NCBI GenBank assembly: GCA_020891255.1
Contig: BQFW01000010.1
Span: forward strand, 620,001 to 684,000
Direction of reading: 5' to 3'
DNA length: 64,000 nucleotides
From: Entomortierella parvispora E1425
Taxonomy: Eukaryota; Fungi; Mortierellomycota
Part shown: one piece after another, positions 21,345 to 50,848 of the stretch
Numbering within the stretch: position 1 is the stretch's first letter
How the letters are laid out: the number at the start of each line of letters is the position of its first letter
Notes under the pieces: model-generated
What the model saw: only the letters and a program-made list of their open reading frames with translations
Database searches by the model: none
What the model was told of the DNA's origin: nothing
Position numbers and translations under genes: made by a program

Positions 21345-22766
21345 ATGAGTGTCTTGATCGAGACATCCGTGGGCGACATTGTCATTGACCTCTACACCAA
21401 GGAGGCACCCACCACCTGCCTCAACTTTCTCAAGCTCTGCAAAGTCAAATACTACAACTTTTGCTGCTTCCACAATGTCCAGCGCGACTTTATGATCCAA
21501 ACCGGTGACCCCACCGCCACCGGTCAAGGCGGCGAATCCATCTACAGTCTCCTCGACAACTCTTCCTCCTCGCAACGTTACCTCCCAGCCGAGATCCATC
21601 CAAAACTAAAGCATCGCGAAAAGGGTACCGTCTCTATGGCCATTGCTGGCGCAAAGACAGGAGCGAACCAGGATTTGAATCGAACCGTTGGAGGCGGCGG
21701 AGGATCCGACACGGGTGTCATTGGATCTCAGTTCTTCATCACCATGGCGGATCATTTGGATTATCTCGATGGACGGTACACAGTTTTCGGAAAGGTTGCA
21801 GAGGGCATGGAAGTACTGGAAAAGATTAATGGGGCTTACACGGATTCTAGCTTCAGACCGTTCAAGGATATTCGCATCAAACATACCATTGTCCTGGACG
21901 ACCCTTTCCCAGATCCAAAGGGTCTTCAGGTACCAGACGAGTCGCCTCTACCAACTCAGGCTATGCTGGATACTGTACGTATCGGAGATGATGAAGAGAT
22001 TGAATCGCTTTTGCCACCCGAGGAAGAGGAGAGGATCCGGAGGCAGAAGGAAGCCCAGGCTCGTGCACTGACGTTGGAGATGGTCGGCGATTTGCCTTTT
22101 GCAGAGATCAAGCCGCCAGAGAATGTGCTGTTTGTGGCTCAGTTGAATCCAGCCACTCGGTCCGAGGATTTGGAGTTGATTTTCTCTCGCTTTGGATTGA
22201 TTCTGAGCTGCGAAGTGATTCGGGACAAGAAGACTGGCGACTCGTTGTGCTATGCGTTTATTGAGTTTGAGAAGGAAGAAGAGTGCTCAGAGGCCTATTT
22301 CAAGATGAACAAGGTCTTGATTGACGACAGGAGAATCCACGTGGACTTTTCACAGAGTGTCAGCAAGTTGCACAAGGACTGGATGGTCAAGAAGATTGGT
22401 GCCAAGAAGGATGGCGTCGCTGCGGACCTGAACCTCGAACAAAGGTCCAGGTACAGGGATGACAACTCGTCGGGACGGAAACAAGGATCTGGATACGACT
22501 ATGTCTTTGAAGAGTCTTCGCGTTCGTCAAGGAAAGAACCTCGCCGAGATGATAGAGATCGGGATAGTAGAGATAACCACAGAGACAAGGATCGGGATTC
22601 GGGAAGACGCCATGAGAGCAGTAGTCATCGCAGTCGGCGGGATCCATCCCCGCGTCGAAGACGTTCACGCTCAGCAAGCCCGCGGAGACGGTCAGAAGGA
22701 GGTGATCGGGATCGTGATAGAAGTAGACATTACGATCGTGATCGCAAGGGGTCCAATTACCGCTAA
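21345..22766 (+). CDS. PPIL4: Peptidyl-prolyl isomerase-like 4 (cyclophilin + RRM + RS/RD-rich tail)
   Basis: [83 protein letters not shown]. Confidence 0.95.
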
Positions 22767-22881: not shown

Positions 22882-23751
22882 CTATCCTTCAGGCTGCTTT
22901 AAATAACGATGGCGGTATTCGCACAGTCTGTCCACCGTCTTTTGCGCCTCTAGAGTCAGGACTTCCTTTTGCTGGAACGCTGCCACACCCACATTTCCAC
23001 CGTGCTTACGTCGACTCATCCGGCAAGCTTCCTCCTCTGAGTACAATTTAACCACAATACCATTCGCCTCTTTGACGTATCCGGATGGGAGGATACTGAT
23101 CTCCTGGGCCGATAAGAGGTACGTCGTCATAATACCCCTGGAGGAAAGATGTCGTCCTTGAATGATGGGTGGGATAGGTTCTGGGTATTGAAGATAGTGC
23201 TGTCGGCGGCATCGTAGACACATTCGAATAAACCAACTCTGCTGGTTCTGCTGGTCTTTACCCCTTCTTGAGGATGTTGGTGTTGCCTCTGTTGCATCCG
23301 CTACGACTCTCCCACTATCATTTCTACAAGCGATTTCGACTGGCAGAGGTCTTGTGGCAAGTCTCTCGTAGACTGACGACGGGACGGCGTACAAGAAGCA
23401 TTGTTCACAGATCCTGCTGCTCACGGCACACAAGTAGAGCATGCGACTCTTGAGCACCGATATCGTCGGCAACGGCTCCGTTGGATGCTCCAACCCCACA
23501 GTCCGTTTGAGTATCCTGGACCAAACGATGGACGAAGAGGTCATTTCCTGAAATGCCCTGCTGGTTCTCGACAGCCTTGCAATCTGGGACGGATAGAGAA
23601 ACGTCAGGATATGATGCCACACCTCCTGAGGCAGGCGATGATGGACGTCAAAGGTCGGACCCCAAGTTGGATCATTGGTTCCTGTAAGACAGGTCTTTGC
23701 TTTAGGAAACTCGCTGAGATGGTCATGGGTCCTGTTGCTGTCAATGGTCAT
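22882..23751 (-). CDS. F-box protein with split CxxC..CxxC finger and XPA-like C-terminal domain (paralog A)
   Basis: F-box LPQEVWHHILTFLYPSQIARLSRTSRAF, then RICEQC...MCLRCR and TYLLSAQEI..VKLYSEEEACRMSRRKHGG. First ATG at 23751. Confidence 0.8.
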   Translation of the reverse strand: MTIDSNRTHDHLSEFPKAKTCLTGTNDPTWGPTFDVHHRLPQEVWHHILTFLYPSQIARLSRTSRAFQEMTSSSIVWSRILKRTVGLEHPTEPLPTISVLKSRMLYLCAVSSRICEQCFLYAVPSSVYERLATRPLPVEIACRNDSGRVVADATEATPTSSRRGKDQQNQQSWFIRMCLRCRRQHYLQYPEPIPPIIQGRHLSSRGIMTTYLLSAQEISILPSGYVKEANGIVVKLYSEEEACRMSRRKHGGNVGVAAFQQKEVLTLEAQKTVDRLCEYRHRYLKQPEG

Positions 23752-24002
23752 ATTGCGCCAGGTCGAGGGGGGAAGAGACAAAGACAAGCAGCGCGCAGCG
23801 GGGAGTCAGGGGGAAAGTGCGAATGCGGCAGTGCTCCTCCGGAGAACAGAAGAGATAAGCCATACTCCACAAGATTTGGGCGAAGTAACCCCTGCACGAT
23901 TTTTTTTTTTTTTTCTTTTGCAAGCAAGCAAGCAAGTAAGTAAGCAGAAGAAAGGTCAACACTGCGATTGAATCGTAATGAACCGCCCACCACTCTTTTT
24001 AT

Positions 24003-25134
24003 TTATAGCTGACAATACGTTTCGATTCTCTCGCAGGTCCTCCGCTCCTGGTCATCGATGGAGAAGGGTGGATCGAGGCCGACGTTTCCGCCATAATTGC
24101 GCTGATACACCCTATACGTAACCTCCTCTGAATATACCGGGACATCGCCCTCTTCTCTCATCGGAAGGAAACCGATCTGATGCCCGGCCAGGCCGTAGAC
24201 CTCTGTGATTCTCCGGAATGACATGAATTTTCCTAATGTATGGGTCGGAACCTCTTCTGGATAGTCCAGGTAATGGGCCTGGCGACATCTAAGACAGAAC
24301 AGGACCTTCCATGTCCTGTTGATCGGTTTCCCCACATACCCAACGCCCCTCTTCCTGTCCTCCTCGTCTCTCTTTTGGATCAGTATGCTGCTATGGCTCC
24401 TTTGTGTGGGGTCGAGGCTGTTGATGCTACTCTCGGGCTCAGGGGAGACCGTTAGAAAGTCGAATTTAGCGGTGTTGGGTTCCCTGCGACCTCGGCGGCC
24501 AAGGATCGCATCCGGAATCAAGACCGGTAAAGGCCTCTCCACTAGATCCGCTGGGCCATTGCTTAGTCGACAGGGGACGGAATAGCTCAAGCACTGTTCA
24601 CAGACTCGGCTACTGACTGCGCACATATACAGCATGTAGCTTTTCGATTCTGGGATGGCAGGCAAAGTATCCAGGAGAACATCGGGACCAAAGGCGGCTT
24701 TGAACAAGCGAGACCAAACAACCGAGGCCGAGATCATTTCGTACAGAGACTTGCTGACTCTAGACAATCGGGCGATTTGAGATGGATAGAGAAAAGTTAG
24801 GATACGTTCCCAGATCTCAAAGGGCAGTCGCTTGTCGGCACTTTGACACTGGTTCTTGGATGGCATCGAAGAGGCTCGTAGGGCAGGCAGCAAGGGCCAA
24901 GTTGGTTTCTACAAGCGCCTCACTTATGGTGGTAAGGCTTGTCTTTGTGATGGCAAGATCCTCGGCTTTGGTGGCAAGGGTAGCGTTTGTGGCTGCAAGA
25001 ACTTGGACCGTGATGGCAAGGGTTGTACTTGTGGTTGTAAGCGCTTCACTCGTGGCTGTAGATGTGATTTGAAGCTGTCGAATAGCCTTGAGCAACTCAC
25101 TGACAATGATGTTATTGTCTACCTCAGGAGCCAT
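24003..25134 (-). pseudogene. F-box/XPA-like paralog B, split by a 1-nt frameshift near 24880 (or expressed from ATG 24866)
   Basis: The N-terminus MAPEVDNNIIVSELLKAIRQL matches paralog C (MAPENDIIIQELLATMQEL) but lies in a different frame from LPFEIWERILTFLYPSQ. No convincing intron bridges the two frames. Confidence 0.7.
24886..25053 (-). repeat. Eight degenerate 21-bp units encoding T-x-x-x-L-x-x heptads
   Basis: TSEALTT/TSTTLAI/TVQVLAA/TNATLAT/KAEDLAI/TKTSLTT/ISEALVE/TNLALAA; absent from paralogs A and C. Confidence 0.7.
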
Positions 25135-25489
25135 AGTGGAATCTTGATGGCAAGCTGCGGTGGGTTGAGCATGAATGAATGAGTGAAAATGGAATCAAAG
25201 CAAAGAGTAAAAGAGTGAAAGGGTCGGGGGAAAGAAAAAAGTGTTTGGAATAAAAGTGAGCACCGTGTGGATGGGGGGATAGTGGCTTGTTTTGTGCGTC
25301 CTTCTCTGTGAAATGGGGGGAGGCAAAGGCAAAGATCGGCCTAAAGATCAATCGTGTGGCAATTGCCATGAAAAAGAGTGTTTTACAAAAGTAACAGAGC
25401 CGTTATGTGTCGTCCATGTCCGAGATGTATCGACAAGTATCAGGTCGGTGGCAGAAAAAGACGAAAAACTCGTTGAAGTGACTTCTGTG

Positions 25490-25800
25490 ACATCATCCAT
25501 TATTATTCCACACGCATGACGAAACCATCTTTTATTCCAGCGAGGGCCAGGCAATGATCTGGCATCCAAAGAATGCATGCCGCTATATAAGAAAGGACAG
25601 GGGTGGTCAATCATGGTCTGCGAATTTTTGTCCGAAATTGGATGGTCCGCTTCAATATATAGACAAGGCCTCGGAAAGAACCACGAGAGATCCTGGACAG
25701 GCGACAACATTGCGGACCAGTTTGTGGAAGCCATTGAGATTCACAAGAAGAAATACTCCAACTATGGCGCACGACACCTCATTAAACTACAATAGTTACG
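25490..25800 (+). mobile_element. Relic of a DDE transposase, probably IS630-Tc1-mariner-related
   Basis: THDETIFYSSEGQAMIW, frameshift, then PLYKKGQGWSIMVCEFLSEIG...GKNHERSWTGDNIADQFVEAI. This matches the recalled HDE..F..W..PL.KKG.GrSIMVS.F..GKN.dg.W motif series. No TIRs found. Confidence 0.65.
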
Positions 25801-25989
25801 TTCTTTTGGAAACCACTCTATCAGGCGCTCTGATTATTGGAAAGAGATCTTTGAGGTGATTGCTCGTCGGAGGTGAATGTCCTTGATATAACGCGAGTAC
25901 TGTATCCTACTTCTCCCTTAATCTCCATAGCTCTTTTCTTCAATAGTTCGACCTTATATCACTGTCTATCAAGGCCGAGGTATACACTG

Positions 25990-26905
25990 GATTACTTGGC
26001 TATTGCTCTGTTGAAAAGAACGCCTCGAATGATTCGCACGTTTTCAACACAAACACTTGCTTGGAATATCTTCAGGTGAGCAACAGACTGTACACCGCAT
26101 TATGTCGCTTCTTTGCTGGCTGGTCGCAAATATCGTTCGCTCTTGTTAATGTGGAACAATGTTGGTCTGATAGAGCCTTATGGAAGGCAGCCCGATGGAT
26201 CCAAGAGATGATAGTAACTCAGAAGTTTCAGACAGAGCCGACGCTCCAAATCCTAGAGGGATCGTCAATTGCGAATAGCGTTATAATGGATATTCTTGAT
26301 CTTGAGAATTATGTCCTACTATCAATGAATCTCCCGTTTACATACGAAAGACTTGAAAAGGCATTTCACCTCTCATCTGGTAGCGTAGCAAACGTCAACT
26401 ATTGGTTTTCTAGAAAGAGAAGCTGAATTCTGATGACTTTTATTGCAGGCAAACTGAAGGAGACTACATGTTCATCCGCTGTGGTATTCTAATTGATCAC
26501 AGTCACATTCCGGCCATGGACAATTGACATGCAGGTTTTCATACCGTCAAAGAAGCGTATTCTAGTGCTGAAGTGGAAAGTCATCCAAATAGACTACCTG
26601 AATCTGGGCGGGCGTTGTTTCAAGAGAGAAAAGAGCGGAGCTCCTGAGTGGCTCACTTGAGGCCAGTTCAATACTTGGCCTAAAGCTTGGAAAGAATGAG
26701 CAGACCAGAGCAGACCATCAAAGACTGGATCCTGAATGGTCCCCGCAATGGACATTCGACCATCTCGCCCTGTACTCAACCTGCAACGTATCTTGTCAGC
26801 CCAGAGATTTCCCGTTTGAAGAGGAATCATGAAGTTACTGGCTATCTAGTTGTCGTTGTTAGCTCTCGTCCGATTTTGTTTTGGAGAGGTGGCATGAACG
26901 ATTGA
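25990..26905 (+). pseudogene. Relic of an AAA-ATPase-like / PD-(D/E)xK nuclease gene (C-terminal part)
   Basis: Fragments VFNTNTCLEYLQ, IDMQVFIPSKKRILVLKWKVIQIDYL (26523 onward; D...ExK with E changed to K) and TIKDWILNGP...YLVSPEI...YLVVVVSSRPILFW, broken by stops and frameshifts. Confidence 0.5.
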
Positions 26906-27024
26906 ACCAGAATAAAGAGAATAGAAGAGTGTTTTGCCAGAGAACCAGAGCGGTTATTTGAGGATCATGACCAAGAAGATCGACAAGTGTTTTATTCTCT
27001 CTTCCTTTCTTTCTTTCAATTCTC

Positions 27025-27942
27025 TTAGAAATGACAATACTCTTCGATTCTGGCATCGGTTCTGTTCTGCTCCTCCTTTTCCTTCCACAAAACTTTCTCT
27101 GTGGTCAAAAGCGCCATCCCAGCGTTTCCCCCGACCTTGTGGCGATGGAGTATAAAGGCCTCCTCTACCGAGTACTCTGTCCATGAAATTAAGGTCGTCG
27201 GGTCATGAGTTAAAGATCTGATCTCAGCGTCCGTCAAGATAAACCCCATATTGATGATCTGGTTGGCAGTGACGCGCTTGTGTTCCATCCCCTTGGGAAT
27301 AGGTTCTGGATAGGTTTCATAATGAGCTTGACGGCAAGGCAAACACAATCGGATAGTCCACCTCGTGTTGATAGGTTCCCCATAGATGATACGCTGCCCA
27401 AATAGTCTAGGGGCTCCTTGGCTCTTACCCCCAGGCCAGAGGCTGTCTCGTTTGTTGATGCGTTGGTGCGGACCGGGGTGATTGAGTCGACGAAGCCGTG
27501 CGTCCGGAACCAGGACAGGCAAGGGTCTTGCCGGGAGCTCTGAGCGGACCATCGAAGGGACGGCATGCACCAAGCACTGTTCACAGACTCGCGTGCTCAC
27601 GGCACACATGTACAGCATGTAGCTTTTTGATTCAGGCATCGCCGGCAAAGTACACAGCACGGCATCCGGTCCAAAGGCTTGGCTGAACATCTTTGACCAC
27701 AGCGACGATGCTGCCACGATATCATGCAGGGTCTTGTTGACTTTGGAAAGCCTCGTGATCTGAGAGGGGTACAGGTAGCTGAAGATCCGCTCCCAGACCT
27801 CCAAGGGTAGAGCCTTGTCGATGCATTGACTCTGTCTGCGAACAACGGGTTGAGCGTGAGGTCGTCCAGAGGCAATGGCGAGCCGCAGTTCCTGCATCGT
27901 GGCCAACAATTCTTGGATAATTATGTCGTTCTCGGGCGCCAT
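27025..27942 (-). CDS. F-box protein with split zinc finger and XPA-like C-terminal domain (paralog C), 305 aa
   Basis: ATG 27942; LPLEVWERIFSYLYPSQITRLSKVNK, RVCEQC...LCLPCR, FILTDAEIRSL..EYSVEEAFILHRHKVGG. Confidence 0.82.
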   Translation of the reverse strand: MAPENDIIIQELLATMQELRLAIASGRPHAQPVVRRQSQCIDKALPLEVWERIFSYLYPSQITRLSKVNKTLHDIVAASSLWSKMFSQAFGPDAVLCTLPAMPESKSYMLYMCAVSTRVCEQCLVHAVPSMVRSELPARPLPVLVPDARLRRLNHPGPHQRINKRDSLWPGGKSQGAPRLFGQRIIYGEPINTRWTIRLCLPCRQAHYETYPEPIPKGMEHKRVTANQIINMGFILTDAEIRSLTHDPTTLISWTEYSVEEAFILHRHKVGGNAGMALLTTEKVLWKEKEEQNRTDARIEEYCHF

Positions 27943-28112
27943 GGTGATGTAACGTGAGATGGTATGGAATGACAGGGGAAGATAAAGAAAGAAGAAAAGA
28001 AAAGAAGAAAAGAACTCAGAAAAGAAGAAGAAAAAAAGAGCTCCCGGGCTGTGCAACCTCGCCCTTCGTCGTCATCTGATAACGCCGCAATTTATTTTGT
28101 TTGCTTCAAAAT

Positions 28113-31100
28113 TTACATGGAATATTGTGGTGGTTGAAGGCCATAGTCAGGAGGGGGCATGTCCCGACTCAGCAATCGACCATCCGGTGTCTGATCTGAA
28201 AATGAATAGTGATGTTGTTGGTGAGGAAGGCGGGAAGTAGACCCTGCCGCGCCTGCGATGGATGCGCCGTACACCGAAGAAGCCATGGACTCCTCTGCTG
28301 GGTTGGGAGACAAGGATCGAGAGCGTGTCCGTGTCACGACGTTCAAGTCTGGTGGTGGTGGTGAAGGACTCTGCCCAGGCAAAAATTGCTGATACTGCAC
28401 CTGTCCGTTTTCGCCCTGTTCTGCCAAAGATGACAACATAGAGTCATACGCACTGACAGAACCCATCCTCATCAATAAGGACTCAGGGTCGACGACTTGG
28501 TGATGTTGGTGCTCTTCGTAGCTTGGGATCAATGGCGCGGAACCTGGGGCGATACCACCCTGGTGCTCATCAGACCCATTCAATCCTGTATAATCGGTCG
28601 TTGGTTCGAACCCAATGTACTCATCCATGCTCATCACTCTAGACCGAGCGAACCCGGGGTCAGATGAACTCGGAGGTGTGCTTGTTGCCTGGGCTCCATC
28701 CGACAAACTTGATGCAACACCGGTCGTAGAGTATGAGAGTACATCATTCAGCGAGGCGTTCTCAAAGAATGTCCTCCGACCAGATTGGGACTCTGGTTGT
28801 GCAGCCCCATTCTCGTTCTGGATTGAGATGGAGGGTACGTTTTGTCGATGTCCTGGAACTGGCACTTCAATGGAGACTCCTGAACTTGAAACATCGACAC
28901 TGCTTCTGTTGCGTCGTCCTGAAAGCGAGAACCTGGATGGGGGAGGCACGGATCGGTCTGAAGGAACAACGGCATCATCACTGTTATGACTATCCCGTCT
29001 ATTCCTGCCAAAGCCAAAGAGACCTCTGGAGGCTTTCTTCCTACCTTCTCTCTCTTGACCAGCTGGTCTTTGGCTGCTGGAGGAACCCTCGCCGTTGCTA
29101 TTCATAATCAAACCTCCAGGAGCTGCGGAGCTGTTCGATCCAGACTTTTGATGGAGGTCCTCCTGATGAGAAGAGCTGGCGTCCACAGTAAGCTCCCTGC
29201 CTGATCGAGATCGAGATCTACTCTTTTTGCGAAATGAATTTTTCTTGTTGTTCAAGGCGGCTTCTTGGCGTTCGCGGTCAACCTCCATCAAAATTTGTGA
29301 ACCGAGCATGTTTCCTGGTGCAAGCACCGACAAAGGCGCCCTGCCTGTCCGAAGAACCACACGACCTTCGAGAGCAACCAAGGGTTGGTTGGGATTGATA
29401 GAAGTGATCAACGTGTCCTCATCATCCTGATCTGGAACTTGAGAAGACTGATTATCTCGGCTTCGACCAAGACCGCGACCATGTGCAGCATCGACATATG
29501 TGTTTGTGAATTCTTCATCCTGGTGCAAAAGCTCCCCACTATCGCGAGTAGGGACCGACTGTGAAGAACTTGAATGTAAGAAAGGTCTGAGAGTGTCTCC
29601 TGGCGCCAATGCAAGCTCGCTCAAACCACCTCTGACGAGCGAATCTGCTTCAGATCCTAGTAGAGGACGACCTTGCTCATCCTCCCAGCCCTCGATTGAG
29701 TACCCTCCTAAGCATGAGTTCTGGAACACATGTCGTCTTGTCCTGGCCAATAAAGGGACAATTGAGTCCCGATAAGCCACCATGGCATTCAGTCGCTGTG
29801 TTTCCTGCGCCACCATTCGCTCCGCTGTCTTGTGTGCGACTCGAAGAGTGGAAATATAAGATCGGAATGCACCCTCCGTAGCAGCATCAAGACTCTTGAG
29901 CGTGGGAGCTAGTACCAAGGACAGCAGATGCCGGATGAATATCATAGTCTTGGTTGAAGCGACATCAGAACGGTATAAATGAATACTTACTGAATTGTCT
30001 TTGGCATGCGGAGGGCTTGAAAGGCACTGACAAGTGGGGTAGGAGGCTTGGGCATGCATCCCTAGCGGCATCTTCGTTTTGATATGCATTTGACAACGAC
30101 AACTCCACACGAAGATCTAGAAGTTTCGGTAAAAGAGTATTAGGTTAGATCTGTCACACACGACATAAGACATAACAGTAAGGGCGCAATTGCCTGTGCA
30201 ACCTACAGAGCTTCATCTTTTGACTGGCCTTGAGTGCATACTCGACCCTCCAGACCTTGTAAGCAGCATCAGAGTATCCGAGAAGTGCCATAAGAGCTGC
30301 CTCTGTCAAGTTGGCTGCTCGTGCAAGGTTGGTAAGAGCAATATTAAATTTTGAGACCTGTTTTTTGACTGCCGTGATTTTAAAGTCGTATTCCTTGAGC
30401 TCCAATTGCCAGTGCAACTCCTCTGGGAAGTCCGTGTTTGCAACCTCATCTACAAAAGAAAACCGGGAAGAAGCGGGGAGAAGCGACACGACGCGTTCAG
30501 TCAGCCAGGGTCCTCTATTTTTAGTCGGTACCAGCCTCGGACAGTCACGAATGTTCCATGTCGGTACTGGTTACTCACCTTTGGACCGATCGAAGACCTA
30601 CATGACATACATAGGGTGAAGGGGGAAAAGTGAGTATGTTCAGAAGAGATGGCGAAAAGAACACTGAGCTCGGTAACAACTAGTGGAAACAACATACCCA
30701 CTCGTTGACTCTCTTGAGCTGTCGAGTATCCTCCAATAGAGCTGCACGTTGCTTATGAAGTTGATATCTCTATGTTGCACAACAGGTAAAACCGGCGTCA
30801 GTAAGTGCAACTGGAGACGATAACCCCGGGATGGGAACAAACTCTCTTTCCTGTCCATCTGTCATGTTTGACATACCACCGTTACGACGTCGTCCCTTTG
30901 ACGCAGACACGATCGCCGTTCGTCTTCGAGAGCTTTCAAGCCACTGATCTCCTGTCGATAGGCCCTTTCGCACTCGGCCTTGTTGATCGTAAACACGGAA
31001 TCGAGCTGTTTCCTGCCCTTGTCACTATATGTCAATGATCAAAGCTGTTAGAAGACAATGCCCCTAGACCAGGTAGTGAAAACTCGTGTTGTATGTAAGC

Positions 31101-50774: not shown

Positions 50775-50848
50775 CGCTCCCGGGTGGGCTTGAACCACCA
50801 ACCTCCTGATTAACAGTCAGACGCGCTAACCAATTGCGCCACGGAAGC
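50775..50848 (-). tRNA. tRNA-Asn (anticodon GTT), intronless
   Basis: GCTTCCG-TGGCGCAATTGGTTAGCGCG-TCTGA CT GTT AA TCAGG-AGGTT-GGTGG TTCAAGC CCACC-CGGGAGC-G folds as a cloverleaf, followed by a T6 Pol III terminator at about 50761-50766. Confidence 0.96.

Follow-up and report, generated by a model that had tools for sequence, protein, structure and literature searches.

In a 64,000-nt window of contig C10 of Entomortierella parvispora (C10:620001-684000; assembly of 38.9 Mb in 20 contigs), three neighbouring genes, here called A, B and C, encode F-box proteins whose C-terminal halves resemble the DNA-binding domain of XPA/Rad14. We propose that they are probably substrate receptors of Skp1-Cullin-F-box (SCF) ubiquitin ligases that have repurposed the XPA fold, that they form an old tandem array and that they represent an unstudied type of F-box protein.

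Gene layout and the F-box half

Genes A, B and C are intronless paralogs on the minus strand, and their whole-length identities to A are 42% (B) and 36% (C). A preliminary description of this DNA had proposed three paralogs that share an F-box and a fixed order of motifs, with spacers of 59, 98 and 76 amino acids (aa) between two cysteine pairs. The spacer lengths proved exact, and Pfam and the alignment bear out the F-box and the motif order, with letter exceptions in C and B. The genes and their parts are:

22885-23751 (-): gene A, 289 aa from the first ATG; open reading frame (ORF) 22882-23787, extending up to a TTG at 23787
23509-23637 (-): gene A, F-box
23398-23409 (-): gene A, first CxxC
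23221-23397 (-): gene A, 59-aa spacer
23209-23220 (-): gene A, second CxxC(R), followed by the XPA_C-like tail down to 22885
24006-24866 (-): gene B, 287 aa from the ATG at 24866; ORF 24003-24893
24702-24830 (-): gene B, F-box
24591-24602 (-): gene B, first CxxC
24297-24590 (-): gene B, 98-aa spacer
24285-24296 (-): gene B, second CxxC, followed by the XPA_C-like tail down to 24006
27028-27942 (-): gene C, 305 aa with an N-terminal helix; ORF 27025-28056
27685-27813 (-): gene C, F-box
27574-27585 (-): gene C, first CxxC
27346-27573 (-): gene C, 76-aa spacer
27334-27345 (-): gene C, second CxxC, followed by the XPA_C-like tail down to 27028

The common order of motifs is CEQC, C[LR/LP]CR, YPE(P/E), (Y/F)xLxxx(E/Q)Ixx(L), YSxE and GGNxG, where C has F in place of the first Y and the literal HGG occurs in A alone (YGG in B, VGG in C). 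A scan of the six-frame translation of the window with the family hidden Markov model found these three copies only. The family profile matches each of them at E 1e-92 to 1e-99, so their paralogy and motif conservation lie far beyond chance. The closest relatives of the three proteins come from Gryganskiella, Entomortierella and Linnemannia.

All three are F-box proteins, as had been claimed. The Pfam F-box-like families (PF12937 / PF00646) match A, B and C at E 3.7e-10, 8.7e-9 and 1.7e-9 (39.8, 35.5 and 37.7 bits, respectively, against a curated cut-off of 24.3), and an F-box match is present in 18 of the 18 members of the family alignment, A2. In an AlphaFold model of whole C, with a predicted local distance difference test score (pLDDT) of 79, residues 40-117 superpose on the F-box of Cdc4 (1NEX_B; Z 7.1; root-mean-square deviation (rmsd) 2.0 Å over 78 residues), followed by FBXO31, Fbw7 and FBXO3, in keeping with a three-helix F-box fold. 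The genome has three Skp1 loci.

The C-terminal half and its relation to XPA and Rad14

Four independent routes tie the C-terminal half to XPA, one of them through longer relatives in the same genome. Neither A, B nor C reaches the cut-off of XPA_C (PF05181), which is reached only by relatives, and searches of PDB sequences with C (phmmer) and with the full-length A2 profile returned F-box chains only. Pfam XPA_C matches three places in the genome. L001 is its ordinary Rad14 (XPA_C 93.2 bits, XPA_N 27.5 bits); the 697-aa ORF at L002, 100% identical to EMPS_01075 of Entomortierella parvispora, combines an F-box with XPA_C (30.6 bits against a cut-off of 25); and the 682-aa ORF at L003 scores 18.9 bits against the same cut-off. 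The family profile also matches L002 and L003, over the F-box region in both and over the C-terminal region covering the XPA_C match in L003. The L002 domain alone matches human XPA chains at E 3.5e-4.

The A3 profile, built from the domain in 22 genome copies with L002 and L003 among them, has XPA as its five best matches among PDB sequences (E 0.007-0.1). Against 1.84 billion representative proteins it matches just 285 clusters at E<=0.001; 59 of these matches are longer proteins, with an F-box in 44 of the 59 and XPA_C in 32. Because A3 contained L002 and L003, a second profile was built from the 18 short copies alone. It matches P0089 of Podila humilis at E 4.6e-7, scaled to the 1.84-billion-protein library, and P0089 exceeds the XPA_C cut-off (26.9 bits) over the same stretch.

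Profile-profile comparison with hhalign aligned the short family with 120 Rad14/XPA sequences (81%, E 1.2e-5, 80 columns) in the register expected from the second CxxC, YxL(T), (M)xLY and (W)GG. The short family aligns with 54 F-box relatives that have short spacers at 99.8% (E 1.6e-28), and these relatives align with Rad14/XPA at 97.3% (E 2.3e-11). The motifs T-K-x-x-A, YxL, NP, MxLY and (W/H)GG are shared stepwise from Rad14 to the long relatives and from these to the short family.

In the whole-C model, residues 217-305 are closest to XPA (6J44, Z 5.1) and Rad14 (5G32, Z 5.0; rmsd 2.4 Å over 64 residues). A Foldseek search with the whole model was dominated by F-box matches, with XPA at ranks 16 and 20 only (E about 2); the domain was therefore folded alone. 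The AlphaFold model of the A domain has a pLDDT of 89 and a predicted template modelling score of 0.79. Searched with Foldseek against 350,542 chains, the model draws its top 11 matches exclusively from Rad14, XPA and the SLC30A9 XPA-like domain (best E 0.012). Searched with VIA-align against 48,161 chains, its top five are XPA 6RO4 (Z 6.3), XPA 6J44 (6.2), SLC30A9 2ENK (6.1), Rad14 5G32 (5.9) and 5LCL (5.7), and the following match drops to 4.4. Lack of structural alignment with XPA/Rad14 had been named as an outcome that would refute the XPA reading; in the comparison made here, XPA/Rad14 chains are the top matches. The ESM Atlas gave leads only for the C-terminal half, with all scores <0.9 and with SLC30A9 and XPA_C clusters among the weak structural rows.

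Since the four routes (long relatives, profiles, hhalign and structure) agree on the family and on the register, we regard descent from the XPA/Rad14 domain as established, by sequence and model comparison, from the second cysteine pair through the C-terminal helix. The claim of an XPA/Rad14-like module holds from the second CxxC to the C-terminus, where hhalign and structure align it; the first cysteine pair lies outside these alignments.

The four cysteines are invariant in 18 family members of several species and in 22 copies of this genome. From this invariance and from its position, we infer that the first half of the zinc finger is homologous to that of XPA as well. No XPA_N match was found by Pfam among the family or the 59 long relatives, and the spacers of A, B and C (59, 98 and 76 aa) depart from the canonical XPA_N spacing, CxxC-17-CxxC. 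Across genome copies and database matches, the two cysteine pairs are separated by anything from 20-odd to about 240 residues, compared to 17 in XPA.

Three segments make up the spacer: a conserved N-terminal one that ends with PLPV(L)V, a variable core, and a third that in most copies carries a conserved (Y)VGxPxNxxWxIRxC ahead of the second cysteine pair. The conserved parts form paired strands in the AlphaFold models, and the core has a pLDDT of 36-50 in C and 54-69 in A. The core is richer in S/T/P/G/N/Q than the remainder (0.42 versus 0.32) and poorer in hydrophobic residues (0.24 versus 0.37). A hypervariable middle with conserved flanks, as initially described, is a fair account of this spacer, and the middle is unalignable. 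Judged from the models, its composition and dN/dS, the core behaves as a disordered insert evolving near neutrality. We read it as a tolerated, near-neutrally drifting loop, and as a specificity element it is an unproven candidate.

Family range, array history and selection

The family profile matches 42 places in the genome, and at least 22 of the ORFs are intact from F-box through both cysteine pairs to the tail, many of them clustered on contig C10. Names were looked up for 30 of the 285 database clusters, a sample with Dikarya outside it, and all 30 come from Mortierellomycota or Mucorales. The genera are Entomortierella, Gryganskiella, Linnemannia, Podila, Mortierella, Actinomortierella, Haplosporangium and Benniella in Mortierellomycota, and Zychaea, Fennellomyces, Apophysomyces, Rhizomucor, Lichtheimia and Umbelopsis in Mucorales or Umbelopsis. 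The L002 protein likewise has orthologs in Mortierellaceae, among them Dissophora and Gamsiella, and the named members of the short form with the long spacer are all Mortierellaceae. Public records label the members 'hypothetical' or 'F-box domain-containing'; the short form is annotated with an F-box only, and precomputed Pfam places XPA_C on long forms only.

Two kinds of unusual architecture appeared among the relatives. Four proteins of Mortierella spp. (P0056, P0064, P0083 and P0091; 540-670 aa) each hold two complete F-box plus XPA-like units; they are genuine tandem-domain proteins, or else gene callers have joined neighbouring genes. The XPA-like module also occurs in a protein of E. 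parvispora annotated as fatty acyl-CoA reductase (P0068, 872 aa) and in an IBR/RING protein of Actinomortierella (P0075, 1182 aa); either fused gene models or novel architectures may explain these two.

A, B and C group with L008, Gryganskiella P0004 and P0005 and metagenomic P0002 and P0003 in a well-supported subclade of eight (Shimodaira-Hasegawa-like approximate likelihood ratio test, 98). Inside it the branches are long and form a polytomy, with B closest to P0002/P0003, and monophyly of A, B and C was neither shown nor rejected (approximately unbiased test, p 0.41). The syntenic locus of Gryganskiella cystojenkinii (L036) has one copy, located between the ortholog of a 665-aa S-rich ORF and a cyclophilin-RRM gene. 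A closer relative, metagenome contig L037 (neighbouring ORF 74% identical), has three copies in the same order. Copy 1 matches C best (48-71% identity), copy 2 matches B best (51%) and copy 3 matches A best (55-69%), so that every copy pairs with the gene at its own position. Therefore, the triplication is older than that split and there has been no recent burst.

Some copies of the array are damaged. L037 copy 1 is split over three frames, and the insert of copy 3 is interrupted by two in-frame TAG codons. In the window, the leader of B is detached from its F-box ORF:

24817-25134 (-): detached leader ORF of B (MAPEVDNNII...), resembling the leaders of C, P0002-P0004 and L037 copy 2

This leader lies one frame off the F-box ORF, and three-frame translation places the change at about 24870-24900; in L037 copy 2 the leader is in frame. 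The frame break reflects either a start at the internal ATG at 24866, or decay, or an assembly indel. Decay, as had been proposed for the array, is thus visible in the B frame break and in two of the three L037 copies, and is limited in extent. The B leader also contains a T/S/A/L-rich stretch (TSEAL.., TTL.., TNATL..) about twice the length of the corresponding P0002/P0003 segment, which looks like a local repeat expansion in the helix predicted at the N-terminus, ahead of the F-box. Dimerisation helices occupy this place in some F-box proteins.

We compared nonsynonymous and synonymous substitution rates (dN/dS) between regions. Pairwise ratios among A, B and C were unusable, as dS was saturated (>1.6 or undefined), and positional orthologs were used for that reason. 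The ratios are pairwise averages, which single-site positive selection could escape:

F-box to PLPV: amino-acid identity 76%, dN/dS 0.15-0.24
XPA-like tail: amino-acid identity 43-55%, dN/dS 0.19-0.54
Insert: amino-acid identity 32-37%, dN/dS 0.59 (54 codons) and 1.39 (19 codons)
Neighbouring gene: amino-acid identity 79%, dN/dS 0.18

Paralogs elsewhere in the genome give the same regional picture. In the adjacent pair L009 (C10:291056-291889) and L011 (C10:292917-293753), the F-box half and insert are 98-100% identical (dS 0.03), while the XPA-like tails are only 54% identical (dS 0.48, dN/dS 0.70). This mosaic suggests gene conversion, recombination or exon-like shuffling within the tandem cluster.

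The codon comparisons show purifying selection on the F-box half. At this level of analysis, the overall pattern is birth-and-death evolution with a fast-drifting putative substrate end, and positive selection is not shown. The arms race that the preliminary description saw in the locus is not supported here: the array is old and conserved in position, and regional dN/dS stays below 1 except in one 19-codon stretch.

The space between B and C had been taken to hold transposable-element relics, which were not confirmed:

25150-27000 (no strand): B-C intergenic stretch, about 1.9 kb of the 2.1-kb gap, outside the F-box family

The gap is single-copy in the genome at both the DNA and the protein level, with no Pfam family at E<=0.01, transposases included, no Atlas match and, apart from the leader of B itself, no counterpart at the syntenic loci L036 and L037. 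The ORF at 25577-25792 was considered as a DDE transposase and rejected, as no tool supported it.

The array is flanked by two genes. The 665-aa serine-rich ORF (28113-30110, minus strand) adjoins it and is 74% identical in L037 and 60% in Gryganskiella L036; its relatives' products have no Pfam family, and its dN/dS of 0.18 against L037 indicates a real gene. The cyclophilin-RRM gene (21345-22766, plus strand), which we take to be PPIL4-like, lies tail-to-tail with gene A and has the same neighbourhood in Gryganskiella, which makes it a synteny anchor. An Rfam gathering scan of the window for ribozymes beside the F-box genes gave one tRNA only, tRNA-Asn(GTT) at 50775-50848 (minus strand), and the palindrome RTCACGTGAY occurs nowhere in the window.

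Proposed function, rival explanations and known systems

To judge whether the module may still bind DNA, we aligned 39 Rad14/XPA sequences, 54 short-spacer relatives, 80 longer-spacer relatives and 18 short genome copies, numbering residues by human XPA from the alignment with 1XPA. The columns K141, K145, K167, W175, K204 and R211 are known DNA contacts of XPA. The fractions of K or R at the basic positions are:

K141: 1.00 in Rad14/XPA, 0.87 in short-spacer relatives, 0.17 in the short family
K145: 1.00 in Rad14/XPA, 0.09 in short-spacer relatives, 0.22 in the short family
K167: 1.00 in Rad14/XPA, 0.50 in short-spacer relatives, 0.06 in the short family
K204: 1.00 in Rad14/XPA, 0.15 in short-spacer relatives, 0.11 in the short family
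R211: 0.95 in Rad14/XPA, 0.30 in short-spacer relatives, 0.11 in the short family

Of the 18 short copies, 15-16 have gaps at the N169-P170 motif and the W175 hairpin. The structural residues Y148, Y181 and G195 are retained in the short family, which also shares the T at T140 with XPA. Net charge over the region is +7 in A, -3 in B and -2 in C, compared to a Rad14/XPA mean of +6.9, and gene A has a K at the K179 position. Judged by these alignments, the short family has lost most of XPA's DNA-binding features.

We propose the following mechanism. Each protein runs from an F-box through a short helical linker into the XPA/Rad14-derived module. There, a predicted zinc knuckle of four cysteines, interrupted by the disordered insert of variable length, precedes the XPA_C alpha/beta subdomain and a long C-terminal helix. 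The F-box would dock on Skp1 and the module would serve as the substrate-recognition end of an SCF ubiquitin ligase. Because the basic DNA-contact residues and the beta-hairpin are mostly lost, the short multi-copy form would now recognise proteins, or another ligand, instead of damaged DNA. A role directed at DNA or chromatin is more plausible for the long, mostly single-copy relatives of the L002/L003 type.

Several explanations compete with this one. The module could still bind DNA, bringing the SCF ligase to distorted, branched or damaged DNA and ubiquitinating proteins there. Its relationship to the XPA/Rad14 DNA-binding domain, by homology and by fold, would fit such a role, as would the K/R at K141 (0.87) and the NP motif kept by the longer single-copy relatives, the +7 charge of gene A and the basic clusters in the spacers of B and C. 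However, the equivalents of K141, K145, K167, K204 and R211 are mostly non-basic in the short family, the hairpin carrying the W175/F262 wedge is deleted, the B and C domains are net acidic, and no other folded part diverges as fast as the C-terminal domain, in which positional orthologs share 43-55% identity. Recognition of DNA or its damage, as had been envisaged from the fold, is therefore unlikely for the short form, with its contact positions mostly lost and B and C net negative. Alternatively, the resemblance to XPA could be that of a generic small fold, a zinc ribbon with a winged-helix-like alpha/beta unit, reached independently. The Z-scores of 5-6 are modest, MerR-type regulators and excisionases come next at Z about 4, and no direct Pfam XPA match exists. 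Yet a significant profile chain reaches the curated XPA_C family in the same register, and the motifs from T-K-x-x-A to (W/H)GG are shared stepwise from Rad14 to the long and the short forms, which makes convergence highly improbable.

Diversifying recognition has been proposed for the expanded F-box families of nematodes and plants, and here too the insert, the C-terminal domain or both could be diversifying to track endobacterial, viral or transposon proteins. The at least 22 intact genome copies, many in tandem clusters on C10, would agree with this, together with birth and death (the broken L037 copies and the B frame break), the dN/dS of 0.70 in the C-terminal domain of the mosaic pair and the values of 0.59 and 1.39 in the insert. 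On the other hand, regional dN/dS is below 1 wherever the sample is usable, the insert, which looks disordered and has few hydrophobic residues, is in line with relaxed constraint, and the three-gene array predates the split from its relative without a recent burst. We consider such adaptive tracking quite unlikely. Very unlikely, in our judgement, is the more specific idea of a fungal surveillance family, in which an XPA fold with an expandable insert diversifies against foreign or DNA-bound proteins that are then marked by SCF for destruction; if true, its targets would be proteins of endobacteria, mycoviruses or mobile elements.

Several observations weigh against our own proposal of protein-directed SCF receptors with a repurposed XPA fold. 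For A, B, C and 15 relatives, Pfam finds an F-box only, with the XPA domain absent even at E<=10. The direct profile-profile probability is only 81%, the first cysteine pair lies outside every sequence or profile alignment to XPA (hhalign), and the structural Z-scores are modest, all being <8 in a range that the tool rates as middling. Gene A, with its charge of +7 and the K at K179, is the least clear case, for which nucleic-acid binding is conceivable. Moreover, gene B may be a pseudogene because of its frame break.

F-box proteins are classed by the domain behind the F-box (WD40, LRR and others), and an XPA/Rad14-derived substrate end has not been studied previously. A literature search for 'F-box' with 'XPA-like' returned no papers, and the sole mention found is PMC10810185 (Nucleic Acids Res 2023), which reports an 'F-box clade' with XPA_N/XPA_C hmmscan matches among remote XPA homologs and treats it as an uncharacterised outgroup. 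Its supplement has no member list for the F-box clade, which may or may not include the short form. PMC7482071 was considered as a precedent and set aside as irrelevant, as its F-box mentions concern bacterial effectors. For annotation, the C-terminal half of these 'hypothetical' or 'F-box-only' proteins can now be named.

Compared with XPA/Rad14 itself (XPA_N + XPA_C; 1XPA, 6J44, 6RO4, 5A39, 5G32), A-C share the C4 site, the alpha/beta subdomain and the long helix. They differ in that the domain stands behind an F-box, the cysteine pairs are 59-98 aa apart rather than 17, and most DNA-contact K/R residues, the NP...W hairpin and the RPA- and TFIIH-binding tails are missing. Unlike a single-copy nucleotide excision repair factor, the family has at least 22 intact copies beside a separate, ordinary Rad14 (L001). 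The family also indicates that the XPA zinc knuckle tolerates inserts of about 10 to >200 residues. The N-terminal XPA-like domain of SLC30A9 (2ENK; among the top three, Z 6.1) is a further case of the XPA alpha/beta fold outside nucleotide excision repair, although it is fused to a cation-efflux transporter rather than an F-box and is likened to A-C by structure alone.

Lineage-specific expansions of F-box families are known from C. elegans (FBA/FTH) and from plants (FBA/Kelch F-box genes). These resemble the present family in their tandem copies, their birth and death and the faster divergence of the substrate end compared to the F-box, but carry another kind of substrate-binding domain. Another close system is the group of long F-box + XPA_C proteins of Mucoromycota sensu lato (L002 = EMPS_01075, L003), which have the same architecture (hhalign 99.8%) and occur in the same genome. 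The long forms have 400-800 aa and a cysteine spacer of 28-35 aa, keep K141 and NP and often exceed the Pfam XPA_C cut-off, whereas A-C are short, multi-copy and divergent, with long inserts. The series from Rad14 through the long F-box/XPA_C proteins, with contacts kept, to the short expanded copies, with contacts lost, could reveal how a DNA-binding fold turns into a protein-recognition module.

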